The translations under genes were made by a program, and so were the position numbers. The notes under the pieces were generated by a model, which saw only the letters and a list, made by a program, of their open reading frames with translations, was not told the origin of the DNA and searched no databases. From IMG/VR virus record IMGVR_UViG_3300020477_001008, positions 124,001 through 188,000 of that record: a stretch of 64,000 bases of DNA; one strand, 5' to 3'. Below, one piece after another: positions 10,802 through 59,090 of the stretch (position 1 is the first letter of the stretch; each line of letters begins with the position of its first letter).

Positions 10802-12121
10802 ATGTCAGAAAAATTTAAGAAAACTCAGGAACGTCTAAATTCAGTTTCGCCAACATTATGTTTGGCTAAATGGCAACAAGTAACGATACATTTACAAAAT
10901 GGACATACACATAGTTGTCACCATCCACAAACACATAAAATTCCTTTAGAAGAAATTAAAGAAAATCCATCAGCATTACATAATACAAAGTTTAAAAAAG
11001 AACAACGTAAATTAATGCTAGAAGGTAAACGTCCTAGCGAATGTCATTATTGTTGGGCAGTAGAAGATTCAAAAGGAGAACATTATAGCGATAGAATTAA
11101 AAAGTCAGCAAACAAAACCTGGGCGGCACCTTATTTTGATGAAGTAAAAAATAACGATTACAATTATGATGTTATACCAAAACAAATAGAAGTAAGCTTT
11201 GGTAATGTATGTAATATGAAATGTTTATATTGTGGTCCTGTGTTTAGTAGTGATTGGTGGAGTGAAATAAAAAATCACGGACCTTATCCTACACAAGACA
11301 GTTATAATAATTTAGAATGGATAGCTGAAACAGATAGGACTCCGTATTTAAACAGAGAATTAAATCCTTATGTAGAAGCTTGGTGGAAATGGTGGCCAAC
11401 AATAAGAAGCGAACTTAAAGTATTAAGAATAACAGGTGGTGAACCTTTGTTAAACCATAACACACAGAAGCTATTAAATGACATTCAGCAGAACCCTGCC
11501 CCGGATTTACAACTGGAAATTAACTCTAATTTGGCAATATCAAATAAACTATTAAAAGATTTTGTAATTCAATTAAAAGTATTGGTACAAGAAAAGAAAA
11601 TTAAAAGTATTCTTATACACACTAGTTGTGATACACACGGAGAACAAGCAGAATATATACGTGAAGGTTTGATATATAATGAATGGTTAGACAACTGTGA
11701 ATACGTATTACAAAATGACATACCAGTACACGTAATGATTACTGCCAATCAATTATGCATTGATCGTTTTTATGTATTTTTACAAGACTTATATTCATTA
11801 AAAGAAAAGTACAAATTAACATACGGAATATCATTATTAAACAATCCACCATTTTTAGATGTGCGTAATTTACCAAAAACAGAGTATTGGAACGCAAAAT
11901 TTAATAGGGTACTTGCTTATGTAAGTGAAAACAAATTTACAAACACTAACGAGTTAAACTATATTATTAGATTAAAAAATTATTATACACAAAGTCAATT
12001 TACTGAACAGCAAATAAAGAACAATAAAGAAGACTTGATGAAGTTTGTAAGAGAAATTGACCGAAGACGTAATAAAAATTTTACTAATACATTTACTACT
12101 TTTATAAATCATATAAGCTAA
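10802..12121 (+). CDS. radical SAM protein with N-terminal twitch/SPASM-like Cys cluster
   Basis: CNMKCLYC (CxxxCxxC), ITGGEPLL; N-terminal LCLAKW...SCHH...ECHYCW. Confidence 0.9.
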   Translation: MSEKFKKTQERLNSVSPTLCLAKWQQVTIHLQNGHTHSCHHPQTHKIPLEEIKENPSALHNTKFKKEQRKLMLEGKRPSECHYCWAVEDSKGEHYSDRIKKSANKTWAAPYFDEVKNNDYNYDVIPKQIEVSFGNVCNMKCLYCGPVFSSDWWSEIKNHGPYPTQDSYNNLEWIAETDRTPYLNRELNPYVEAWWKWWPTIRSELKVLRITGGEPLLNHNTQKLLNDIQQNPAPDLQLEINSNLAISNKLLKDFVIQLKVLVQEKKIKSILIHTSCDTHGEQAEYIREGLIYNEWLDNCEYVLQNDIPVHVMITANQLCIDRFYVFLQDLYSLKEKYKLTYGISLLNNPPFLDVRNLPKTEYWNAKFNRVLAYVSENKFTNTNELNYIIRLKNYYTQSQFTEQQIKNNKEDLMKFVREIDRRRNKNFTNTFTTFINHIS

Positions 12122-12165: not shown

Positions 12166-13290
12166 ATGTTTAATATTTTAACTCTAGACAAAGTAAGAAA
12201 AATTGAAGTAGAGACTACTACCTACTGTAACGCAGGATGTCCTCATTGTGCAAGACATAAACCAAATACAAGTATATTGCAAGACAATATGGAAATGGAA
12301 CATCTTAATTCTGAGTTAATTTATAAACTTAAAGATGACTTTGGTGAACAAACATCAAAAATGGATATATGGTATGTAGGTAATTTAGGTGATTCATTAA
12401 TGCACCCTCATATGGAAAATATGTGGGATTTTACTGCTAAAAATTTTAGATATACTGAAATGGAAACTAATGGTGGTGCAAGAAAAAAAGACTTTTGGAA
12501 AAATTTAGGAAACATTAGTAAAACAAATGGTAATGCTATGATGCTTTTCTCTATTGATGGTTTAGAAGATACTAATGAAATATATAGAAAAAAAGTAAAG
12601 TGGGACGCTGTAATGGAAAATGTTCAAGCTTATATTGGTGCTGGAGGATTAGCTACTTGGAAATGGTTAATTTTTAAACACAATGAACATCAGGTAGAAG
12701 AAGGAAAAGAGTTAGCAAGAAAATTAGGATTTGCAGAATTTATACCTCAATATGCAACACGATTTGAACAAAAAACATATGATGCTACACCAAAGAATGT
12801 TAATGAAAATGTTAAAAAGAGTTTAGGAAAAGATAACCTTGTTAAGCTCCAAGAATCAGAAGTACAACACGCATCAAATATTTCTGAAGTAACTTCTAAA
12901 AAATTAAAGCAAGTTAATTTTGATAATTCAATATTAAAAGTAGATTGCAAATATATTAAAAAACAACGTATGTATTTGAATGCTAGAGGTAGAGTATGGC
13001 CTTGTTGTTGGCATTCAACTTGGGATCAATTTAATGATCATAGACATATGGATCCATTAATATTACCTCATTATAAAAGAGGATTCAATAATTATCATAC
13101 AAAATCGATGTCTGAAATATTTAATGATTCAGCTTGGAAAGAAATGACCGATGCTTGGGAAACAGAATCAGTAAATGAAAGAGGAAAACAACCAATGAGT
13201 ATATGTTATCGTAAATGTATGAATAAAAAATGGGAAGCTTTATGTAATATTAAAGATTTGGAAAATAAGGCAGTTTTTGCAAATCATTAA
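12166..13290 (+). CDS. radical SAM protein with C-terminal SPASM/twitch domain
   Basis: CNAGCPHC, FSIDGLE; C-terminal CKY...VWPCCW...CYRKC. Confidence 0.9.
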   Translation: MFNILTLDKVRKIEVETTTYCNAGCPHCARHKPNTSILQDNMEMEHLNSELIYKLKDDFGEQTSKMDIWYVGNLGDSLMHPHMENMWDFTAKNFRYTEMETNGGARKKDFWKNLGNISKTNGNAMMLFSIDGLEDTNEIYRKKVKWDAVMENVQAYIGAGGLATWKWLIFKHNEHQVEEGKELARKLGFAEFIPQYATRFEQKTYDATPKNVNENVKKSLGKDNLVKLQESEVQHASNISEVTSKKLKQVNFDNSILKVDCKYIKKQRMYLNARGRVWPCCWHSTWDQFNDHRHMDPLILPHYKRGFNNYHTKSMSEIFNDSAWKEMTDAWETESVNERGKQPMSICYRKCMNKKWEALCNIKDLENKAVFANH

Positions 13291-17217: not shown

Positions 17218-17631
17218 ATGAAGAAGCGATTAGACGTAGACGACAATACAGCAATTAGTATGCCAATCCGTAATATGATTGCCATCATTGGTGTCGTATG
17301 TATTGGTGTTTGGGGTTACTTTGGTATAACTGAAAAACTTAATCAGCACTCAACTACAATTACGTTAATGCAAAAAGATCTCAACGAAAATTCAGAATTT
17401 AGAATTAAATATCCTCGAGGCGAGTTAGGCCAATCACAAAATGATTTAGAACAATTTATGCTCATCGAAGAGCTGTATACACAAATTGAAAGAATGCAGA
17501 AGCATCTAGATGATATGGCAAACAACAAAATAAACATAGAATTTTTAAAAGAGCAAATGGAAAAAGCTCAATCAAGTATTGAAAAACTAAAAGATGCAGA
17601 CAGAGAGATTGTCTACAAGAACGGAAACTAA
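17218..17631 (+). CDS. hypothetical membrane-anchored coiled-coil protein
   Basis: One hydrophobic segment (MIAIIGVVCIGVWGYF) followed by heptad-rich region. Confidence 0.75.
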   Translation: MKKRLDVDDNTAISMPIRNMIAIIGVVCIGVWGYFGITEKLNQHSTTITLMQKDLNENSEFRIKYPRGELGQSQNDLEQFMLIEELYTQIERMQKHLDDMANNKINIEFLKEQMEKAQSSIEKLKDADREIVYKNGN

Positions 17632-17843
17632 TGATAGAAACAGTTGTAGCCTTATTGATGTTTATTAATAATGAGATCAAAGAACACAGAATACAAGACA
17701 CTATGAGTCAGTGTTTAAGAGGAAAACGTACAGCCGAAAGACAATATTCTGAAGGAGTAAAGTATCAGTGTATCAAGTCTAAAGCTGAAGTAGAACTAAA
17801 TATTGACGGAAGTAAAACAATCAAATCTTTGATACTGGAGTAA
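17631..17843 (+). CDS. hypothetical small protein
   Basis: 70 aa, translationally coupled; hydrophobic N-terminus and two Cys. Confidence 0.7.
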   Translation: MIETVVALLMFINNEIKEHRIQDTMSQCLRGKRTAERQYSEGVKYQCIKSKAEVELNIDGSKTIKSLILE

Positions 17844-17845
17844 TT

Positions 17846-18121
17846 ATGAAATTATTAGCAACTATACTATTTTTATTCGCAACTGTGGCAGTAGTCACAG
17901 ACGTTAATGCTGGTCACAAAAGAGGCAATGGTACTTGTTTTGATGACTATACGCATTGGAAAAATATGATCAACAAAAGATCTGATGCACCACTTTGGCA
18001 ACAAAGTAAGGATATGAGAGATTTAGCAATATCTCAACGTGTCCAAGGTAATACTGAAAAGTGCGAAGAATTAATGGAAGAAGCTTTACGAATGATTCGT
18101 AAACCTTATCCAACTGAATAA
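17846..18121 (+). CDS. hypothetical secreted protein
   Basis: Sec-type signal peptide MKLLATILFLFATVAVVTDVNA; two Cys. Confidence 0.7.
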   Translation: MKLLATILFLFATVAVVTDVNAGHKRGNGTCFDDYTHWKNMINKRSDAPLWQQSKDMRDLAISQRVQGNTEKCEELMEEALRMIRKPYPTE

Positions 18122-18127
18122 ATCTGC

Positions 18128-18155
18128 TTGACATCGGAGCAAAATCAAGTATAAT
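18128..18155 (+). promoter_or_regulatory. consensus sigma70 promoter of the B12 module
   Basis: TTGACA(18128-33)-N16-TATAAT(18150-55). Confidence 0.85.
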
Positions 18156-18164
18156 AAAAATTAA

Positions 18165-18341
18165 GTAGTGAATCGTGTTGGGGAATCAGTGTGAAATTCG
18201 CTGGCTCTACCAGGAACCGTAAAGTCGGAGTGCCAACCACTACAAGTCCGCTGTCGAATGAGGGCCTGGGAAAGTCTAGTTCTACAATGAAAAGTTAACA
18301 GTGGCGAGGCACGGCAACGTGTCATAAGGAAACTGTTAATG
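18165..18341 (+). ncRNA. cobalamin riboswitch (5' UTR) with RBS-sequestering expression platform
   Basis: Closing helix GTAGTG/CACTAC, GGGAA, T-loop GTGAAATTC, ACCGT, TGCCA; possible kissing pair CCAGG/CCTGG; TTAACAGT...ACTGTTAA stem encloses SD AAGGA and reaches the ATG; precedes a BtuB-like gene. Confidence 0.8.
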
Positions 18342-18848
18342 AATAAAACAACTGAAACGTTAGTATTATTTCTCTACTATATAGGTATTATAGCCTTGAG
18401 TAGAATAATACCACATCCACCAAACTTTACACCGGTTATTGCTATGGCAATTTTTATGCCATATATGACTCGCGATGTATATTTGGCTATGTTAGTTCCA
18501 ATTACGGCAATGTTTGTTTCAGATCTTTATTTGGGTTTGCACTCATTTATGATTTGGATTTATGGAACTATAATGTTATGTACACTTGTTAGTAGATATT
18601 TTAATTTAATAACAATGTCTATATTTGCACCAGTTATATTTTTTACAACAACTAATTTTGGTGTATGGTTAACAAGCACATTATATCCAAAAACACTAGA
18701 CGGTTTAATCTTATGTTACACGATGGCGATACCTTTTTTTAGAAACACATTATTGAGTACGATATTTTATATATTATTACTTGGAGCAATATATGAAATA
18801 GCAAAAAGGAGTTATACGTGGTTAAAAAAATATTACTATCTGCAATAA
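18339..18848 (+). CDS. DUF6580-like / ECF S-component-like membrane transporter (putative cobalamin)
   Basis: SRIIPHPPNFTPV.A.A.F motif, SDL.LG, NFGVW, Y..AIPFF.NT; multiple TM helices. Confidence 0.75.
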   Translation: MNKTTETLVLFLYYIGIIALSRIIPHPPNFTPVIAMAIFMPYMTRDVYLAMLVPITAMFVSDLYLGLHSFMIWIYGTIMLCTLVSRYFNLITMSIFAPVIFFTTTNFGVWLTSTLYPKTLDGLILCYTMAIPFFRNTLLSTIFYILLLGAIYEIAKRSYTWLKKYYYLQ

Positions 18849-20686
18849 TACTATTATGTTGGTGGCTTGTTATGACAAAGGTACAAGCTAATGAAACAGA
18901 ACAATTTAAATCAGAATCTTTTTATGAAGAAGATGGTGCGTTAGTTGTTGATATAACAATTTATTTGATTAGAGATCCAAGCACACTTACAACAAAATCA
19001 ATGAGTGTTGATTATGTAGACAAATACACAATTGAAAATACAAATAGTGTTGATACAATACAAGCAATACAAAGAGTAACAGGTTTAACAATAGTACAAT
19101 CAGGTCCAACAGGACAACAAACATCAATCTTTATGAGAGGAACAAATTCTAATCATACAATGGTTGCTATAAATGGAATACCAATTAAAGATAATTCAAC
19201 AACAGGCGGACTACACGATTTAGGACAAGACTTTATTAAACATATTACTGGAATACAAGTAGTAAAAGGTTCACAAGGAACACTATTTGGTCCAAATGCA
19301 GTTGGTGGTGTAATTAATTTTATTACAACAGACAGTTATGAAAATTCAATATCAACAACAATAGGATCAAACAATACTAAAGGTGTAACAGTAAAAATAC
19401 ACGAAGATATTGATAATCACTCAATAAGTTTAATTTTAGATGGTACAAAATCAGATGGTATATCAGTATATCCAAATGGTGCTGAAAAAGATGGATATGA
19501 TACTAAAAATATTACAGTAAACACAAATAGTAAATTTGAAAACTTTGATATAGGAACTACTATTATTAAAAGAAATAATAATTCAGATTTAGATGCATCA
19601 GGTTCTGATGATACAGATTACACATCAAATAACAAAATGAGTGTATATCAAATTTATACAAAAATAAAAAATGCACTAGGATTTAGTAATTTTACTTTTT
19701 CTAGAAGTGAATATGATAGAGAATATGTAAATGGTACAGAAATTGATGAATATGATTCAAATACGAACACTTATCTTTTTACAAATACTTTTATGTTTAA
19801 TGATTTTGATATAACGCCTGGTATTGAGTATGAACAATATGATGGTACGTTTAACAATAGAGGTTCATATACATCATCAGTTGATAAAGAAGGAGATAAC
19901 ACAGGAACATTTATTAATGGAAATTATCTAGTAAATGATAAACTTCTTTTTTCAATAGGTTTAAGAAATGATAACTCTAGTATGTTTAACAACTATAACA
20001 CTTATAGACTAGGTACTACATATGAACTAACTGATGACTTAACATTAAAAAGCAATTATTCAACAGCAGTAAAAACACCTACACTATACGAACTATATGG
20101 TGCAGACAGTTATGGTTATAATGGTAATCCTGACTTACAACCAGAAGAAGCAGAAACAATAGATATAGGTTTTGAATATCAAATAAATGATAAAATGGAT
20201 ATGGACCTTGTTTACTTTACTACTGACTTAGATAATATGATCACGTATGGTAATAGTACATATTCAAATGCAACAGGTACATCTAACAGACACGGTGCTG
20301 AATTAAAAATGAATAGTGCTATAGATGAAAACTTTTATGTAAGGTCAGGTACAACGTTTACTATTGCACAAGACAGTGATGATAAACAAGTTACTAGAAG
20401 ACCAAAATGGAATTGGTTTACAGGTATTGATTACAAGAAAGACAAAGTTACAAACACACTTGAATGGATTTATACTGGAAAGCATTTAGACATAGATTCA
20501 CAAACTTATGCTACTATTGAAAAACCAGCAGTTGATATAATTAATTTTCATTCAAAGTATGAGCTTAATGAAAGTTCAGAATTAATACTTTCTGTAAACA
20601 ATCTTACAGATGTAGATTATGAAAGACCAGATGGCTATTCGCAAGATGGTAGAAACTTCTTACTAACATTTAAAATTAAATACTAA
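18818..20686 (+). CDS. btuB: TonB-dependent outer-membrane receptor, BtuB-like (vitamin B12)
   Basis: Signal peptide; plug motif SIFMRGTNSNHTMVAINGIPI, GSQGTLFGPNAVGGVINFIT, NPDLQPEE; C-terminal NNLTD.DYE...GY...GR.F....K.KY; downstream of Cbl riboswitch. Confidence 0.85.
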   Translation: MVKKILLSAIILLCWWLVMTKVQANETEQFKSESFYEEDGALVVDITIYLIRDPSTLTTKSMSVDYVDKYTIENTNSVDTIQAIQRVTGLTIVQSGPTGQQTSIFMRGTNSNHTMVAINGIPIKDNSTTGGLHDLGQDFIKHITGIQVVKGSQGTLFGPNAVGGVINFITTDSYENSISTTIGSNNTKGVTVKIHEDIDNHSISLILDGTKSDGISVYPNGAEKDGYDTKNITVNTNSKFENFDIGTTIIKRNNNSDLDASGSDDTDYTSNNKMSVYQIYTKIKNALGFSNFTFSRSEYDREYVNGTEIDEYDSNTNTYLFTNTFMFNDFDITPGIEYEQYDGTFNNRGSYTSSVDKEGDNTGTFINGNYLVNDKLLFSIGLRNDNSSMFNNYNTYRLGTTYELTDDLTLKSNYSTAVKTPTLYELYGADSYGYNGNPDLQPEEAETIDIGFEYQINDKMDMDLVYFTTDLDNMITYGNSTYSNATGTSNRHGAELKMNSAIDENFYVRSGTTFTIAQDSDDKQVTRRPKWNWFTGIDYKKDKVTNTLEWIYTGKHLDIDSQTYATIEKPAVDIINFHSKYELNESSELILSVNNLTDVDYERPDGYSQDGRNFLLTFKIKY

Positions 20687-20712: not shown

Positions 20713-21483
20713 ATGCCATACCACAATAGTGATAAAAGGTTTGAAAAATATCAGAACATAGCATTTATGCCATTAGACATTCCATATGAAAAAATGGATT
20801 TAGAAGAGCTACAAGTATTTTCTGATAGGAACTATATATGGCCACCTGATGTACACACAAATTTGTACGGAAATAAAAAAAACAAACACGGTGAATATGT
20901 TGAAAAACATCCTCATATGATTTGGAGAATAGTTTGTTTACGTGGTCAAGGATTTGAAAAACCTGAAGATTGGATTGATGCGGCAATGGTTAGAAACTCT
21001 TGGTCAAGCAGATTAGAACGTACACAAGAAGTTAAAAACAATCCAAACTTACCAAAAGAACTACAAGGTATAATAAAGTTAATTGAACAATTACCTATAC
21101 AATGTAATCACGCAGAACTTGTACAGCAAAGAAAAGATGTTCCATTACATAATGACGCCGCAGTAGATTTAGATTCAAGTAAGCTATCTCCATATGAACC
21201 ATCAGGTTTTAGATTACTATTAAATGATGTAAGAAAACCAAGTTTTTATTTCTGTAAAGAACACAAACCAACAGAAGACAATCCATTGTTATATGTGGAT
21301 GTACCAATGGATACAAATGCGTTTGTGATTAATGAATTAGTATACCCACACGGTGCTAAAAAAATAGACGAATTAAAGTGGGTAGTAACAGCAACTGGTC
21401 CTATAGATTCTGGAAAACATTTACAATTATTGGAAAAAAGCTATAACAAATATAGTGATAAAATAATTGCATTTACAGAGTAA
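20713..21483 (+). CDS. hypothetical protein, possible 2OG/Fe(II) oxygenase-type cupin
   Basis: HxD (LHND) and distal His (YPHGA); late promoter TATAAATA at 20687-20694. Confidence 0.45.
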   Translation: MPYHNSDKRFEKYQNIAFMPLDIPYEKMDLEELQVFSDRNYIWPPDVHTNLYGNKKNKHGEYVEKHPHMIWRIVCLRGQGFEKPEDWIDAAMVRNSWSSRLERTQEVKNNPNLPKELQGIIKLIEQLPIQCNHAELVQQRKDVPLHNDAAVDLDSSKLSPYEPSGFRLLLNDVRKPSFYFCKEHKPTEDNPLLYVDVPMDTNAFVINELVYPHGAKKIDELKWVVTATGPIDSGKHLQLLEKSYNKYSDKIIAFTE

Positions 21484-21563: not shown

Positions 21564-21592
21564 TTGACTTTATCATAAAAGCTAAATATAAT
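21564..21592 (+). promoter_or_regulatory. overlapping sigma70 and late promoter of the SSB gene
   Basis: TTGACT(21564-69)-N17-TATAAT(21587-92), with TAAATA at 21583-88. Confidence 0.7.
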
Positions 21593-45792: not shown

Positions 45793-46998
45793 ATGGACAC
45801 TACTAATAATAAATTTTTTTGTTTTTATCCCTTTCGTGCGATTGATGTATTAGCAGATTCGTCTGTGGTACCTTGTTGTAGATTTGATGGAAGGCACGAC
45901 AAAAGCTTACAATATGTTAATGATAAAAATTCTATAACTGATGCGTTTAATTCTGATTACTTTAATAACTTAAGAAAAAAAATGTTAGCTGGTGAAAAAG
46001 TTAACGGTTGCTGGAAATGTTATAAAGAAGACGAAGCAGGTATTAAAAGTATGAGGCTTGGCTCTGATGAATTTATGGAGCAAACTACAGATGTAGGATT
46101 AGAATTTGTAGAATTAGAATCAGGTAGGTTTTGTAATTTAAAATGTAGATCGTGTAGCCCAGCAGTTTCAAGTGGATTTCATAATGAAGTTAAGTCTTCA
46201 AAATTTATGGCTGAACATTTTGGAATAGATTTAAACAATGAAATATTAGATCCTGCAAATCAATTAAACAAATCGTTTTTATATATTTCAAAAGAACAAG
46301 CACAGAAAATAAAATATATTAAAGTTACAGGTGGGGAACCTCTATTAAGTGAATATTTTTTAAAGTATATTCAAAATCTTAATGAATGGGGTTTGTCAAA
46401 AAATATCACTTTAGAAATCTATACTAATGCATCTTTTCTACCAAAACAAAAGCTCTCAGATGCGTTAAAACCTTTTAAAAAAATTTACTTGTTTATGAGT
46501 ATTGATGCTATAGGTAAAAAATCTGATTATTTAAGATCAGGTAGCAATTGGACTACAATGGAAAAAGTTGCAAAGCATTGGTATGATTTATCAACACAAA
46601 TGAATATGGAATTAAATGTTAGTACTACAATATCTATCTATAATGTTTTATATCTAAAAGAATTAATTGATTGGATACAACAAACTATTAAAATTTCTTG
46701 GCCAAGTATAAATTTTGTACATAATCCTTCGTATATGTGTGTATCAAGCTTTAATGTTGATATTAGAAATGAAATACTTAATACACTACAAAATACTTGG
46801 GACGAAAAAACATTAACAAGTAGGCAAGCCAGAGAATATAAAAAAATTATAAATTTTGTTGAAAATACTACAGAATCTATACCTCCTCACTATTTTTTTG
46901 AAACTACAGAAACAATAGATAAAATTAGAAATGAAGATTGGAAACAACTATTTCCGGAGTTATACAGCTTATTAAGTAGGTATAAAAACAGTATATAA
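45793..46998 (+). CDS. radical SAM protein with N-terminal twitch domain
   Basis: FCFYPF...PCCRF...GCWKCY; CNLKCRSC; VTGGEPLL; SIDAIG..YLR. Confidence 0.9.
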   Translation: MDTTNNKFFCFYPFRAIDVLADSSVVPCCRFDGRHDKSLQYVNDKNSITDAFNSDYFNNLRKKMLAGEKVNGCWKCYKEDEAGIKSMRLGSDEFMEQTTDVGLEFVELESGRFCNLKCRSCSPAVSSGFHNEVKSSKFMAEHFGIDLNNEILDPANQLNKSFLYISKEQAQKIKYIKVTGGEPLLSEYFLKYIQNLNEWGLSKNITLEIYTNASFLPKQKLSDALKPFKKIYLFMSIDAIGKKSDYLRSGSNWTTMEKVAKHWYDLSTQMNMELNVSTTISIYNVLYLKELIDWIQQTIKISWPSINFVHNPSYMCVSSFNVDIRNEILNTLQNTWDEKTLTSRQAREYKKIINFVENTTESIPPHYFFETTETIDKIRNEDWKQLFPELYSLLSRYKNSI

Positions 46999-47293: not shown

Positions 47294-48229
47294 ATGTCAA
47301 CAAGAAATATATGGGGTATAGGACAAGATACATTAAACTTTCCATCTGATACTATTCCAGTATCAAGTATGATGAGTGATACACAAAAGAATTTAATTAA
47401 TAGTGGATTACTTGATCAAGTTGATTTTACGGATCCTTGGGGAAGAAAATCTAAAGCATATCCTGGTTTTCAAAATCCGCATAATGATACTTTAACACAA
47501 ATTGCTAATGGCTGGAATTCAAGATTATCAGTTATGCCAGATGGTTGGAATGATAGCAACTATGCCAATAGAGCAGTTGTTGATGGAAATGCATTAGGTA
47601 ATGGTTTCAGTGCTAGAAAGTTAACTGATACAGAAATTAAAGATATTGGTTTTGTTGAAGGTATATTAAAAGACTTTACATTTTTAACTAATAGACAATC
47701 TGGTATGGACATTATGGAATATGCAAATCCTAATAGTATGTGGTCAGCATTAGGAAATACAGGTACCTATGGTGCTATGGTTGGTTTACCTACCACAGCA
47801 AGTTTTCCAACTGGTATTGTAGTTCCAGGTGTAACAAATTATCTTGGTGTTGCTAGAACTATAAATGAAATTGGACAAATTTTAAATAATGTACCAACAG
47901 GTTATACTTCTGGTCCTTGTAAATGGATAGAAGATATAATGAAAGCTGTAATGAAAGGTGGTTCAATATTAGCAGATATATTGAATAAAGTACTTGACGT
48001 ATTAGGCATCATTGGATTAGTAAACTCAATACTTGGTATGATTAAAATGTTAATGGATATGATACTTGAAGATCTAAGAACATTAGGATCAGCTATTGAA
48101 AGAATGAAGCAGGCGGCTTTATCTGGATTGTTAGAAGCATTAATGAAAGACCCTTGTATGAGATACTTAATTACGGCAGGGTTGGCAGTAGCTGGTACAG
48201 TAGCAATATTAAAAACAACCTCTCTATAA
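47294..48229 (+). CDS. hypothetical protein downstream of PAAR, hydrophobic helical C-terminus
   Basis: 311 aa, SD AGGAGG; long amphipathic/hydrophobic C-terminal helices. Confidence 0.75.
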   Translation: MSTRNIWGIGQDTLNFPSDTIPVSSMMSDTQKNLINSGLLDQVDFTDPWGRKSKAYPGFQNPHNDTLTQIANGWNSRLSVMPDGWNDSNYANRAVVDGNALGNGFSARKLTDTEIKDIGFVEGILKDFTFLTNRQSGMDIMEYANPNSMWSALGNTGTYGAMVGLPTTASFPTGIVVPGVTNYLGVARTINEIGQILNNVPTGYTSGPCKWIEDIMKAVMKGGSILADILNKVLDVLGIIGLVNSILGMIKMLMDMILEDLRTLGSAIERMKQAALSGLLEALMKDPCMRYLITAGLAVAGTVAILKTTSL

Positions 48230-48269
48230 TTTTTTCTTGTTTTTTCTAAAAATTCGTGTATAATTAACA

Positions 48270-48514
48270 GACAACGTTGAAGTTATCGTAATAGATTATA
48301 TGGACGTGGGGGCAGTACCCACCACCTCCACCATTAAGTTAAAAAGTTTTATGGGGGTGAACTAGGATCGACAGTAATTCAAAGGGTAATGGAGTTGTCC
48401 GGATGGAAGCTCGGTTAACGCGACAAACTTATAAATGCAGATGAAAATCTAGCACTTGCGGCCTAATTCGTTAGGCTAACGGGGTCCGGGGCACCTGGCA
48501 ACAGAACGCCCCAC
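48270..48514 (+). ncRNA. ssrA: circularly permuted (two-piece) tmRNA, alphaproteobacterial type
   Basis: Acceptor piece with T-arm GTGGG-GGCAGTA-CCCAC and CACCTCCA-CCA (ends 48333); 19-nt intervening segment; coding piece starts GGGGGTG at 48353 (G3:U70 pair) with GGATCGAC; tag gca gat gaa aat cta gca ctt gcg gcc taa = ADENLALAA (48437-48466); GGCAACAGAA; 5' end approximate. Confidence 0.93.
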
Positions 48515-48521
48515 TTGTATT

Positions 48522-50268: not shown

Positions 50269-50358
50269 GGAAGGGTGGCTGAGTGGTTGAAAGCACCGGT
50301 CTTGAAAACCGGCAAAGGCGCAAGTCTTTCGTGAGTTCGAATCTCACCCCTTCCGCCA
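50269..50358 (+). tRNA. tRNA-Ser(TGA)
   Basis: Cloverleaf GGAAGGG...CCCTTCC-G-CCA, anticodon arm CCGGT-CTTGAAA-ACCGG, long variable arm, TTCGAAT. Confidence 0.97.
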
Positions 50359-58934: not shown

Positions 58935-59010
58935 GGGCGGTTAGCTCAGTTGGTAGAGCATCTCGTTTACACCGAGGGGGTCAAAGGTTCGAGTCCTTTA
59001 CTGCCCACCA
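58935..59010 (+). tRNA. tRNA-Val(TAC)
   Basis: GGGCGGT...ACTGCCC-A-CCA; anticodon loop TTTACAC; TTCGAGT. Confidence 0.97.
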
Positions 59011-59014
59011 TTAC

Positions 59015-59090
59015 GGAGTATTAGTGTAGCGGTTAACACGTCGCCCTGTCACGGCGAAGACCACGGGTTCGAATCCCGTATACTCCGCCA
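59015..59090 (+). tRNA. tRNA-Asp(GTC)
   Basis: GGAGTAT...ATACTCC-G-CCA; anticodon arm TCGCC-CTGTCAC-GGCGA. Confidence 0.97.

Follow-up and report, generated by a model that had tools for sequence, protein, structure and literature searches.

Why would a very large marine phage carry a vitamin-B12-sensing RNA switch in front of two predicted transporter genes, and what would the virus do with the vitamin? To address this question, we analyzed a 64,000-nt stretch of DNA (hereafter the window; positions 124,001 to 188,000 of IMG/VR record IMGVR_UViG_3300020477_001008) together with the 242.6-kb record to which it belongs, which is estimated to be about 55% complete. A preliminary description, made from the sequence alone, had reported a perfect sigma-70 promoter, a cobalamin riboswitch, a DUF6580-like inner-membrane protein, a BtuB-like TonB receptor, and an 8-bp stem that encloses the SD and touches the ATG. 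Every one of these elements is present where it had been placed (Table 1), so the observation is confirmed. The interpretation offered with it is only partly supported: the region is a B12-riboswitch-led transport operon in a real phage, the stem at the ATG is a conserved translational sequestor, and the RNR is B12-independent, but the likely consumer of the vitamin had been missed. The same contig encodes a predicted cobalamin-dependent enzyme, so the virus probably imports B12 to run its own chemistry during infection, with both import and use inferred.

Table 1. Features of the operon and of the linked radical-SAM gene (window positions, except for the last row, which gives positions on the same contig, labeled G000:C1).
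Position	Strand	Feature	Details
18128-18155	+	Sigma-70-type promoter	TTGACA-16 nt-TATAAT
18165-18243	+	Cobalamin riboswitch aptamer, class II	Rfam AdoCbl-II / AdoCbl-variant, RF01689
18210-18213	+	L5 loop nucleotides CCAG	Proposed kissing-loop partner of L13
18244-18251	+	J1/13 linker	8 nt, between P1 and P13
18252-18286	+	Proposed P13 hairpin	Stem 18252-18258 / 18280-18286 with one Y-U mismatch; 21-nt loop L13 (18259-18279) with kissing-loop bases CUGG at 18266-18269
18248-18304	+	Proposed anti-sequestor helix	CCGCUGU (18248-18254) / ACAGUGG (18298-18304); mutually exclusive with both P13 and the sequestor
18295-18339	+	Sequestor hairpin	Arms 18295-18302 / 18332-18339; encloses the SD AAGGAA (18326-18331); last base is the A of the ATG at 18339
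18339-18848	+	DUF6580 membrane protein	169 aa; proposed inner-membrane cobalamin transporter of the solitary ECF-S-component type
18818-20686	+	BtuB-like TonB-dependent outer-membrane receptor	622 aa; GTG start preceded by the SD AAGGAG (18806-18811); overlaps the DUF6580 gene by 31 nt
G000:C1:90887-92668	-	Homolog of cobalamin-dependent radical-SAM methylases	593 aa; about 31 kb upstream of the window

We first asked whether the operon is a genuine phage feature. The window encodes tail sheath, terminase, gp32, and UvsX, and its terminase is closest to those of jumbo myoviruses. The operon lies at the same syntenic site in 10 related viral loci from 8 contigs, and both genes evolve under purifying selection (dN/dS 0.13 for DUF6580 and 0.09 for the receptor). 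The riboswitch is present in 12 of 36 DUF6580-bearing viral records. The long cobalamin riboswitch RF00174 was found neither in the record nor in 24 riboswitch-less relatives, and no riboswitch of any kind lies near DUF6580 in those loci or in three other Pseudomonadota genomes with DUF6580 genes. The DUF6580 tree is rooted at the midpoint only, without outgroup sequences from other Pseudomonadota. The GenBank phage collection contains no DNA match, no DUF6580, and no TokK-like gene, and its BtuB-like hits are mostly bacterial records or short unannotated fragments.

The promoter matches the consensus at 12 of 12 positions, is one of only four perfect matches on both strands of the record, and has its -35 and -10 boxes kept at the same place in related phage leaders; it probably drives early transcription by the host RNA polymerase. 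The riboswitch matches RF01689 over the full model (positions 1-81) at 85.1 bits (gathering score 36.5; E 5e-20), and it is the only cobalamin riboswitch in the record. Its junction helices P1-P6 are supported by covariation: across 75 relatives, 93.6% of cells are paired and 15 pairs show changes on both sides, which 0 of 500 shuffles reach, while slid controls give 30-46%.

A conserved 3' extension of the riboswitch holds a kissing-loop partner for L5. The three pairs scored (CCA with UGG; CCW/W'GG across the family) are paired in 75/75 sequences, the third switching from U-A (56 sequences) to A-U (19), and a fourth G-C pair is also paired in 75/75. This switch is largely a split between phage-type and SAR11-type sequences, and so it reflects few independent events. 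The columns of the P13 stem are 100% paired but invariant or changed on one side only, so covariation supports the kissing loop but not the stem itself. The anti-sequestor, which is inferred, likewise gains no support from covariation: it is a perfect 7 bp in every phage-type sequence inspected, whereas in SAR11-type sequences the two middle pairs are often mismatched (34/75 and 64/75 paired). The 8-bp sequestor stem is exact and is part of the minimum-free-energy fold. It also exceeds chance, as the equivalent arm finds its best partner on the SD/start region in 52 of 73 family members (71%), against 23% for shuffled arms, with compensatory variants such as ACAGC:GCUGU and ACAUC:GAUGU.

The closest characterized RNA is the env8HyCbl class-II riboswitch, which belongs to the same aptamer family, exerts translational control, and is reported to regulate through a cobalamin-dependent L5-L13 kissing loop and to prefer hydroxo- or methylcobalamin (PMC5028336). 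Its J1/13 linker is 7 nt, and the linker length tunes the kissing-loop rate (PMC5028336). A canonical env8-like copy sits before a receptor gene in another viral contig. In env8 the ribosome-binding site lies in L13 itself, whereas here L13 carries no SD; a conserved extension of about 60 nt follows, and the SD and start codon are buried in a separate hairpin 45-70 nt downstream. This resembles the E. coli btuB layout of a kissing loop plus a separate sequestor. The extension is shared by phage and SAR11 copies.

Based on these elements, we propose a switch, whose ligand and polarity are inferred. When the infected cell is B12-replete, cobalamin would lock the kissing loop between L5 and the loop of P13, which would leave the arm UUAACAGU free to pair with ACUGUUAA; this would bury the SD and the start codon, and translation would be OFF. 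When B12 is scarce, CCGCUGU would pair with ACAGUGG instead, freeing the start so that translation is ON. The opposite polarity is not excluded, in which ligand-stabilized kissing-loop formation favors the CCGCUGU/ACAGUGG helix, keeps the start site open, and B12 induces the transporter. In line with this possibility, the sequestor is the default in the thermodynamic fold, 5 kcal/mol more stable than the fold with the anti-sequestor forced, and the kissing-loop partner lies inside the loop closed by CCGCUGU/ACAGUGG. However, we consider an ON switch unlikely: characterized members of this family, and btuB leaders in general, are OFF switches (PMC5028336; PMC9296465), an 8-nt J1/13 followed by a local P13 hairpin reproduces the env8 geometry, and the CCGCUGU/ACAGUGG helix is mismatched in most SAR11-type members.

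The two genes behind the switch were then compared with known B12 transporters. The receptor has Plug (PF07715, 4.6e-17) and TonB-dependent barrel (PF00593, 2.2e-36) domains and is of BtuB size. Its best NCBIfam family is TIGR01779 (TonB-B12), at 227.6 bits against 100 bits for the next substrate class, and its best solved relative is E. coli BtuB, matched over the full length at E 1e-28. It nevertheless falls far below the BtuB equivalog cut-offs (227.6 against 599.7 bits for TIGR01779, 179.9 against 836 bits for NF007926), and it is only about 23% identical to enterobacterial (Salmonella) BtuB sequences. As in the E. coli btuB operon, a B12 riboswitch precedes a TonB-dependent receptor of this type; here, however, the receptor is encoded by a virus, it is co-transcribed with and downstream of an inner-membrane component, and the aptamer is class II rather than the long AdoCbl class. 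A signal peptide followed by a candidate beta-strand TonB box, GALVVDITIY, was read from the sequence alone. No TonB or ExbD was recognized in the phage record; a MotA/ExbB-like ORF exists, but its neighbor gave no ExbD match, and no TonB_C reached its cut-off in five SAR11 genomes.

The DUF6580 protein matches PF20221 at 138.4 bits (gathering threshold 27; E 3e-40; profile positions 5-159 of 162). Its AF2 model (pLDDT 86.6) has the ECF S-component fold, which makes the earlier label of a DUF6580-like inner-membrane protein more precise. Foldseek gives probabilities of 0.93-0.98 to FolT and BtuM, and the top VIA-align match is the solitary ECF-S-component-like B12 transporter BtuM of Thiobacillus denitrificans (8c7p; Z 13.6 over 152 residues), with RibU, BioY, ThiT, and FolT at Z 10-13. 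BtuM is likewise a small six-helix protein, and BtuM-type transporters co-localize with btuB in Gram-negative bacteria (PMC6072759), as DUF6580 does with the receptor here; no CbiQ/EcfT was found in the record, incomplete as it is. On the other hand, DUF6580 has no characterized member, and sequence homology to BtuM was not detected: phmmer found no PDB hit at E<=10, and a profile search found only 6fnp_A at E 0.053. The invariant residues of DUF6580 are R22, PHPPN at 25-29, D62, W73, and CYTMAIPFF at 126-134, in which C126 is the only invariant cysteine; the cobalt ligand of BtuM, Cys80, lies in loop L3 (PMC6072759).

What, then, would consume the imported vitamin? The RNR in the window is class Ia, with alpha and beta subunits both above their NCBIfam cut-offs. 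We also asked whether DUF6580-only phages carry a B12-dependent class II RNR, but the hits in two of these genomes (G029 and G031) are class I alpha subunits above their own cut-offs, and the idea was rejected. A six-frame screen of the record with PF02310 (B12-binding) found nothing. This was a false negative, as a radical-SAM screen followed by NCBIfam and PDB searches uncovered the 593-aa protein in Table 1, on which PF02310 alone is weak (E 0.035). It matches TokK (7kdx) at E 2.3e-49 over residues 15-395, aligning to TokK residues 21-403 across the cobalamin-binding and radical-SAM domains, CysS at 3e-34, and NF033712 at 4.8e-45, and it has CxxxCxxC at residue 195. At 153.9 bits against the NF033712 cut-off of 700, it is a relative, not a KedN5 ortholog.

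In this record, the radical-SAM gene is about 50 kb from the operon. It is 82-84% identical in five viral records and in a 324-kb contig from an NCBI assembly, where it lies 0.6-6 kb from DUF6580/TBDR. KedN5-like genes occur in 3 of 4 complete DUF6580-bearing phage genomes; one complete DUF6580-bearing phage, G029, has no TokK-like gene.

Altogether, our preferred explanation, held with moderate confidence, is a phage-borne, feedback-regulated cobalamin uptake operon. Host RNA polymerase would transcribe the env8-like riboswitch and two translationally coupled genes, and the imported cobalamin would feed a phage-encoded class-B radical-SAM methyltransferase related to TokK, CysS, and KedN5. 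This enzyme belongs to an unusually large phage set of radical-SAM enzymes, which the phage backs with its own Fe-S assembly genes. Of the two routes offered in the preliminary description, host metabolism (e.g. MetH and SAM supply) or an enzyme encoded elsewhere, the evidence favors the second. We consider the sequence elements, the membership of the riboswitch in RF01689, the kissing-loop covariation, the conserved start-site sequestor, the folds and homologies, the conservation and purifying selection in phages, and the linkage to the B12-dependent radical-SAM gene to be demonstrated by the analysis, while cobalamin binding by the RNA and by the enzyme, the polarity of the switch, the transported substrate, the role of the consumer enzyme, and the host are inferred, without experimental support for any step.

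An alternative is that the operon acts as a classical auxiliary metabolic gene set, importing B12 to boost host pathways such as the host's own B12-dependent radical-SAM enzymes or methionine/SAM supply. SAR11 genomes carry the same riboswitch-TBDR-DUF6580 locus next to their own B12-binding radical-SAM genes, many DUF6580-bearing phage fragments show no B12 enzyme, and the phage encodes 23 radical-SAM ORFs that all consume SAM. However, the TokK-like gene on the same contig is tightly linked to the transporter genes in other lineages. The MetH/SAM-supply idea in particular is not supported: in five SAR11 genomes that carry the locus, the B12-binding-domain hits lie in open frames of 360-707 aa, and none has the length expected of MetH, although SAR11 as host is itself only inferred. 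We regard this alternative as less likely.

The preliminary description had also raised receptor competition or superinfection exclusion. TonB-dependent receptors are common phage receptors, the phage protein is below the BtuB cut-offs, and some phage lineages carry DUF6580-TBDR without a detectable riboswitch, so the receptor might act mainly at the cell surface, as an exclusion factor, decoy, or replacement receptor, or might take up a different ligand, with the riboswitch an inherited leader of little adaptive meaning. We consider this improbable. The riboswitch, kissing-loop partner, and sequestor are all conserved in phage copies, with phage-specific compensatory states and a dedicated consensus promoter, and the receptor is translationally coupled to an S-component-like importer. 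Several lineages keep DUF6580 alone or link it to a B12 enzyme, which an exclusion role does not explain, and the inferred feedback control by B12 argues for a nutritional role.

Phage reuse of a host-type metabolite sensor is known from the glutamine riboswitch of Melnitz and pelagiphages (PMC9004378), and reuse of a host-type uptake protein from cyanophage pstS. Here, by contrast, the predicted ligand is cobalamin, the switch would govern a two-membrane uptake pathway, and a predicted phage-encoded consumer enzyme is present. A survey of pelagimyophages reported no riboswitches (PMC7029224), and we found no report of a phage cobalamin riboswitch in the literature searched. Viruses are usually thought to take cofactors as they find them in the host, whereas this phage appears to sense a vitamin, import it across both membranes, and spend it on its own enzyme, which would extend the idea of auxiliary metabolic genes from bulk nutrients to trace cofactors. 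B12 is scarce and often growth-limiting in the surface ocean, and infected cells that scavenge it more strongly would change who competes for it.

A broader reading is possible but tentative: a jumbo marine phage running its own cofactor economy in a streamlined host, gating B12 import with a riboswitch, building Fe-S clusters with its own Suf and Nfu genes, and using both to power a battery of about 23 radical-SAM enzymes, one of them a cobalamin-dependent methylase that makes a phage-specific modified product. In this view, the riboswitch would be a distinct subclass of class-II cobalamin switches, shared with SAR11, in which the kissing loop is uncoupled from the ribosome-binding site, and DUF6580 would be a new family of solitary S-component cobalamin importers. 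The analysis offers leads on a function for DUF6580 and on a variant class-II architecture, and it bears directly on whether btuB in SAR11 is regulated by B12, a question raised in the literature (PMC9296465), as about a third of the SAR11 genomes sampled carry the riboswitch-receptor-DUF6580 locus.

RNA-library contigs cover the leader and parts of the receptor gene at low depth, but they cannot be told apart from DNA carry-over. The radical-SAM gene of this phage sits among 2OG-Fe(II) oxygenases, a SPASM radical-SAM gene, and SufBC-like genes, and the receptor is represented by more than 120 clusters at 62-94% identity in marine metagenomes.

The operon lies in a linear, single-contig IMG/VR viral record (G000) of 242,646 bp, which has 32% G+C and is about 55% complete by CheckV; the window is G000:C1:124001-188000. 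The record is a phage: the window encodes a tail sheath, a large terminase subunit, and a virion protein immediately upstream of the operon, plus helicases, gp32, and UvsX. The terminase is closest (50-54% identity) to those of the jumbo myoviruses PA5oct, Phosso, and Atu_ph07, and related records reach 324-328 kb, one of them with terminal repeats. All of the elements named in the preliminary description were recovered, namely a perfect promoter, a cobalamin riboswitch, a DUF6580 gene, a BtuB-like receptor gene, and a class Ia RNR; its observation is confirmed. The promoter is one of four perfect sites in the record. The best family for the TonB-dependent receptor, which overlaps the DUF6580 ORF, is the B12 receptor, and its best solved relative is E. 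coli BtuB.

Features of the B12-related locus and other regions of the phage record
Feature	Coordinates	Strand	Details
Radical-SAM ORFs	window 10802-12121, 12166-13290		CxxxCxxC
Conserved small ORF	window 16982
Three small ORFs	window 17218-18121		137, 70, and 91 aa
Promoter	window 18128-18155		TTGACA-16-TATAAT
Riboswitch aptamer	window 18165-18243		RF01689 AdoCbl-II, 85.1 bits
L5 bases	window 18210-18212		CCA; followed by G18213
CCGCUGU/ACAGUGG helix	window 18248-18254 / 18298-18304
P13 hairpin (proposed)	window 18252-18258 / 18280-18286
L13 bases	window 18267-18269		UGG; preceded by C18266
Sequestor arm	window 18295-18302		8-bp stem with the SD/start region
DUF6580 ORF	window 18339-18848
TonB-dependent receptor ORF	window 18818-20686		overlaps DUF6580
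Downstream ORF	window 20713-21483		256 aa
Second promoter, near consensus	window 21564-21592		TTGACT-17-TATAAT, 11/12
Radical-SAM ORF, "N-terminal twitch"	window 45793-46998		above NF033640 cut-off
tmRNA, two-piece (permuted), alpha-proteobacterial type	window 48221-48515	+	152.8 bits to RF01849
tRNA genes	window 50269-50355, 58935-59007, 59015-59087
Region around the TokK-like gene	G000:C1:88161-94609		outside the window, about 30 kb upstream
TokK-like radical-SAM gene	G000:C1:90887-92668	-	593 aa
DnaK to FeS_assembly_P run	G000:C1:190246-196674		outside the window, downstream
SAR11 riboswitch-receptor-DUF6580 locus	L069:3714-6361		Pelagibacter contig

The operon is a maintained phage feature rather than an accident. 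When window proteins were compared by tblastn with related viral loci, DUF6580 and the receptor were found at the same site in ten loci from eight contigs, between the virion protein and small ORF on one side and gp32/UvsX on the other, with receptors that are 65-88% identical. Two contigs keep DUF6580 alone at that site, while other lineages carry DUF6580 plus a receptor (36-41% identical) elsewhere, or DUF6580 alone. Twelve of 36 DUF6580-bearing viral records have the riboswitch directly upstream. Between the window and its closest relative, dN/dS is 0.13 for DUF6580 and 0.09 for the receptor, and the receptor has more than 120 clusters at 62-94% identity in marine metagenomes. The three small ORFs between the conserved small ORF and the promoter, the last of which has a signal peptide, have no counterpart in the closest related viral contigs and no Pfam match. 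The ORF directly downstream of the receptor gene is conserved in relatives (75-93% identical), although it has no Pfam, NCBIfam, or PHROG match.

An alignment of 23 viral DUF6580 proteins shows invariant R22, PHPPN (25-29), D62, W73, TNF (105-107), and CYTMAIPFF (126-134). The AlphaFold model (pLDDT 86.6) has the ECF S-component fold. FolT and BtuM lead the Foldseek matches, and by VIA-align, BtuM bound to cyanocobalamin (8c7p) ranks first at Z 13.6 over 152 of 169 residues, followed by RibU, FolT, BioY, and ThiT at Z 10-13. Sequence searches gave no hit to BtuM, and no EcfT was found in the record. BtuM-type proteins are solitary S-components encoded beside btuB in Gram-negative bacteria, and they bind B12 through Cys80 in loop L3 (PMC6072759). 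We therefore propose, from the predicted fold, that DUF6580 works like BtuM, without assigning it to that family.

Phage leaders share a nearly invariant 3' extension of about 60 nt after P1. Pattern scans found this extension in 15 viral contigs, two Pelagibacterales genomes, and more than 120 metagenome contigs, which gave 75 distinct sequences for alignment. On these sequences, the Rfam helices are well supported, with 93.6% of cells paired, a value reached by 0 of 500 shuffles. Three L5 bases pair with the UGG of L13 in 75 of 75 sequences, and the pair at 18212/18267 switches between U-A (56 sequences) and A-U (19). A fourth pair, G18213 with C18266, is also paired in 75 of 75 by a separate count of our own. 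The scan pattern left the covarying position free, and L5 was not part of it. This is the L5-L13 kissing loop that defines regulation in this riboswitch family (PMC5028336). An 8-nt J1/13 linker and a local hairpin would present L13 as in env8, but because the stem of this hairpin is invariant, covariation cannot test it.

Unlike in env8, L13 holds no SD. Instead, the conserved arm at the end of the extension pairs with the SD/start region, and the 8-bp stem of the window is part of the MFE fold. Across 73 members, the best duplex of the arm falls on the SD/start window in 52 (71%), against 23% for shuffled arms, and the matching changes include ACAGC:GCUGU, ACAUC:GAUGU, and GGCAU:AUGCC. The CCGCUGU/ACAGUGG helix excludes both P13 and the sequestor, which would give a classical three-helix OFF switch. 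This helix is perfect in every phage-type sequence that we inspected, but its centre is often mismatched in SAR11-type sequences, so the polarity of the switch is inferred. No terminator-like site was found in the leader, and we therefore take the control to be translational.

Two other arrangements were seen among related contigs. In six viral and metagenome contigs (L058, L063, L120, L132, L163, and L174), the same promoter and phage-type riboswitch lead directly into a different receptor (about 30-40% identical, with a Cys-rich mature N-terminus), with no DUF6580 gene coming first. In viral contig L052 (IMGVR_UViG_3300044271_002983), a canonical env8-like class-II riboswitch, with a short platform and the SD in the L13-like hairpin, precedes a receptor gene; this contig also has DUF6580 and a KedN5-like gene 24 kb away.

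The probable consumer of B12 lies outside the window. A radical-SAM screen of the whole record returned 23 ORFs, all with CxxxCxxC and most with an N-terminal Cys-rich region, which is an unusually large set for a virus. One of them, the 593-aa TokK-like protein, matches NF033712, the methylcobalamin-dependent KedN5-type C-methyltransferase (4.8e-45), as well as the solved cobalamin-dependent methylases TokK (2.3e-49, residues 15-395) and CysS (3e-34). Its gene lies among two 2OG-Fe(II) oxygenase-like ORFs, a SPASM radical-SAM gene, a GNAT, a SufBD-core protein, and a SufC-like ABC ATPase, which look like phage-encoded Fe-S assembly genes beside modification enzymes. An orthologue (82-84% identical) occurs in five viral records and in a 324-kb contig from an NCBI assembly, where it lies 0.6-6 kb downstream of DUF6580-TBDR. 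With the family HMM, KedN5-like genes appear in 9 of 40 DUF6580-bearing records and in three of the four complete ones, again mostly within a few kb of DUF6580. A methylcobalamin-cycling enzyme needs only the corrinoid, not adenosylation, which fits a riboswitch family that prefers hydroxo- or methylcobalamin (PMC5028336).

Altogether, the interpretation in the preliminary description is partly supported and can be made sharper. The sequence elements, the kissing-loop covariation, the conserved pairing at the start site, the homologies, and the gene linkage are shown by the analysis, while cobalamin binding, the polarity of the switch, corrinoid import, the role of the TokK-like enzyme, and the host are inferred. 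We are very confident that the RNA is a genuine cobalamin riboswitch, and fairly confident that the operon imports a corrinoid. That its purpose is to serve the phage TokK-like enzyme is only somewhat more likely than not, and we hold the explanation as a whole with the same modest confidence.

The same genes have a cellular counterpart in SAR11. A Pelagibacter contig (L069) that begins with the 3' end of 23S rRNA carries the riboswitch, receptor, and DUF6580 in that order just after the 23S rRNA gene, beside GmhA and a B12-binding radical-SAM gene. DUF6580 occurs in 99 of 401 Pelagibacterales species genomes, but in only 3 of 400 other Pseudomonadota sampled. RF01689-like matches occur in 51 of 151 Pelagibacterales genomes, and wherever we compared them with the DUF6580 position, even those below the gathering score lay 2-2.6 kb upstream of it, with one divergent exception (genome G145). 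This bears on whether SAR11 regulates B12 uptake (PMC9296465). B12-binding-domain proteins lie within 12 kb of DUF6580 in five SAR11 genomes, and within about 3 kb in three of them.

In a midpoint-rooted tree, the main phage DUF6580 clade is sister to a SAR11 clade, and other phage copies group with a second SAR11-like clade. However, the phage gene order (DUF6580 then receptor) is the reverse of the SAR11 order, and the phage receptor is only 24-29% identical to SAR11 receptors. Together with the 32% G+C and the alpha-type two-piece tmRNA, this makes SAR11 or a similar streamlined alphaproteobacterium the leading host candidate, though this is not shown. No TonB_C domain reached its cut-off in the phage or in five SAR11 genomes. 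Downstream of the window, the phage encodes a run of DnaK, a MotA/ExbB-like 200-aa protein, ClpS, an SbmA/BacA-like membrane protein (PF05992, E 1e-135), an Nfu/NifU scaffold, and an FeS_assembly_P protein. There is a possibility that the MotA/ExbB-like protein energises the receptor, and, as a BacA-family protein of M. tuberculosis imports B12, the SbmA-like gene may also be relevant.

Riboswitch-controlled btuB is textbook bacterial biology, and phage riboswitches (glutamine; PMC9004378) and phage nutrient-uptake genes are also known. A survey of pelagimyophages found no riboswitches (PMC7029224). Our literature searches found no phage cobalamin riboswitch, no paper on DUF6580, and no phage B12 uptake operon, although their coverage was incomplete and this is absence of evidence only. 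The logic of the system is familiar, whereas its bearer, the inner-membrane component, the layout of the expression platform, and the link to a phage B12 enzyme are new. Beyond the operon, the second, near-consensus promoter lies upstream of gp32, which has the highest depth in the RNA libraries mapped to the region.
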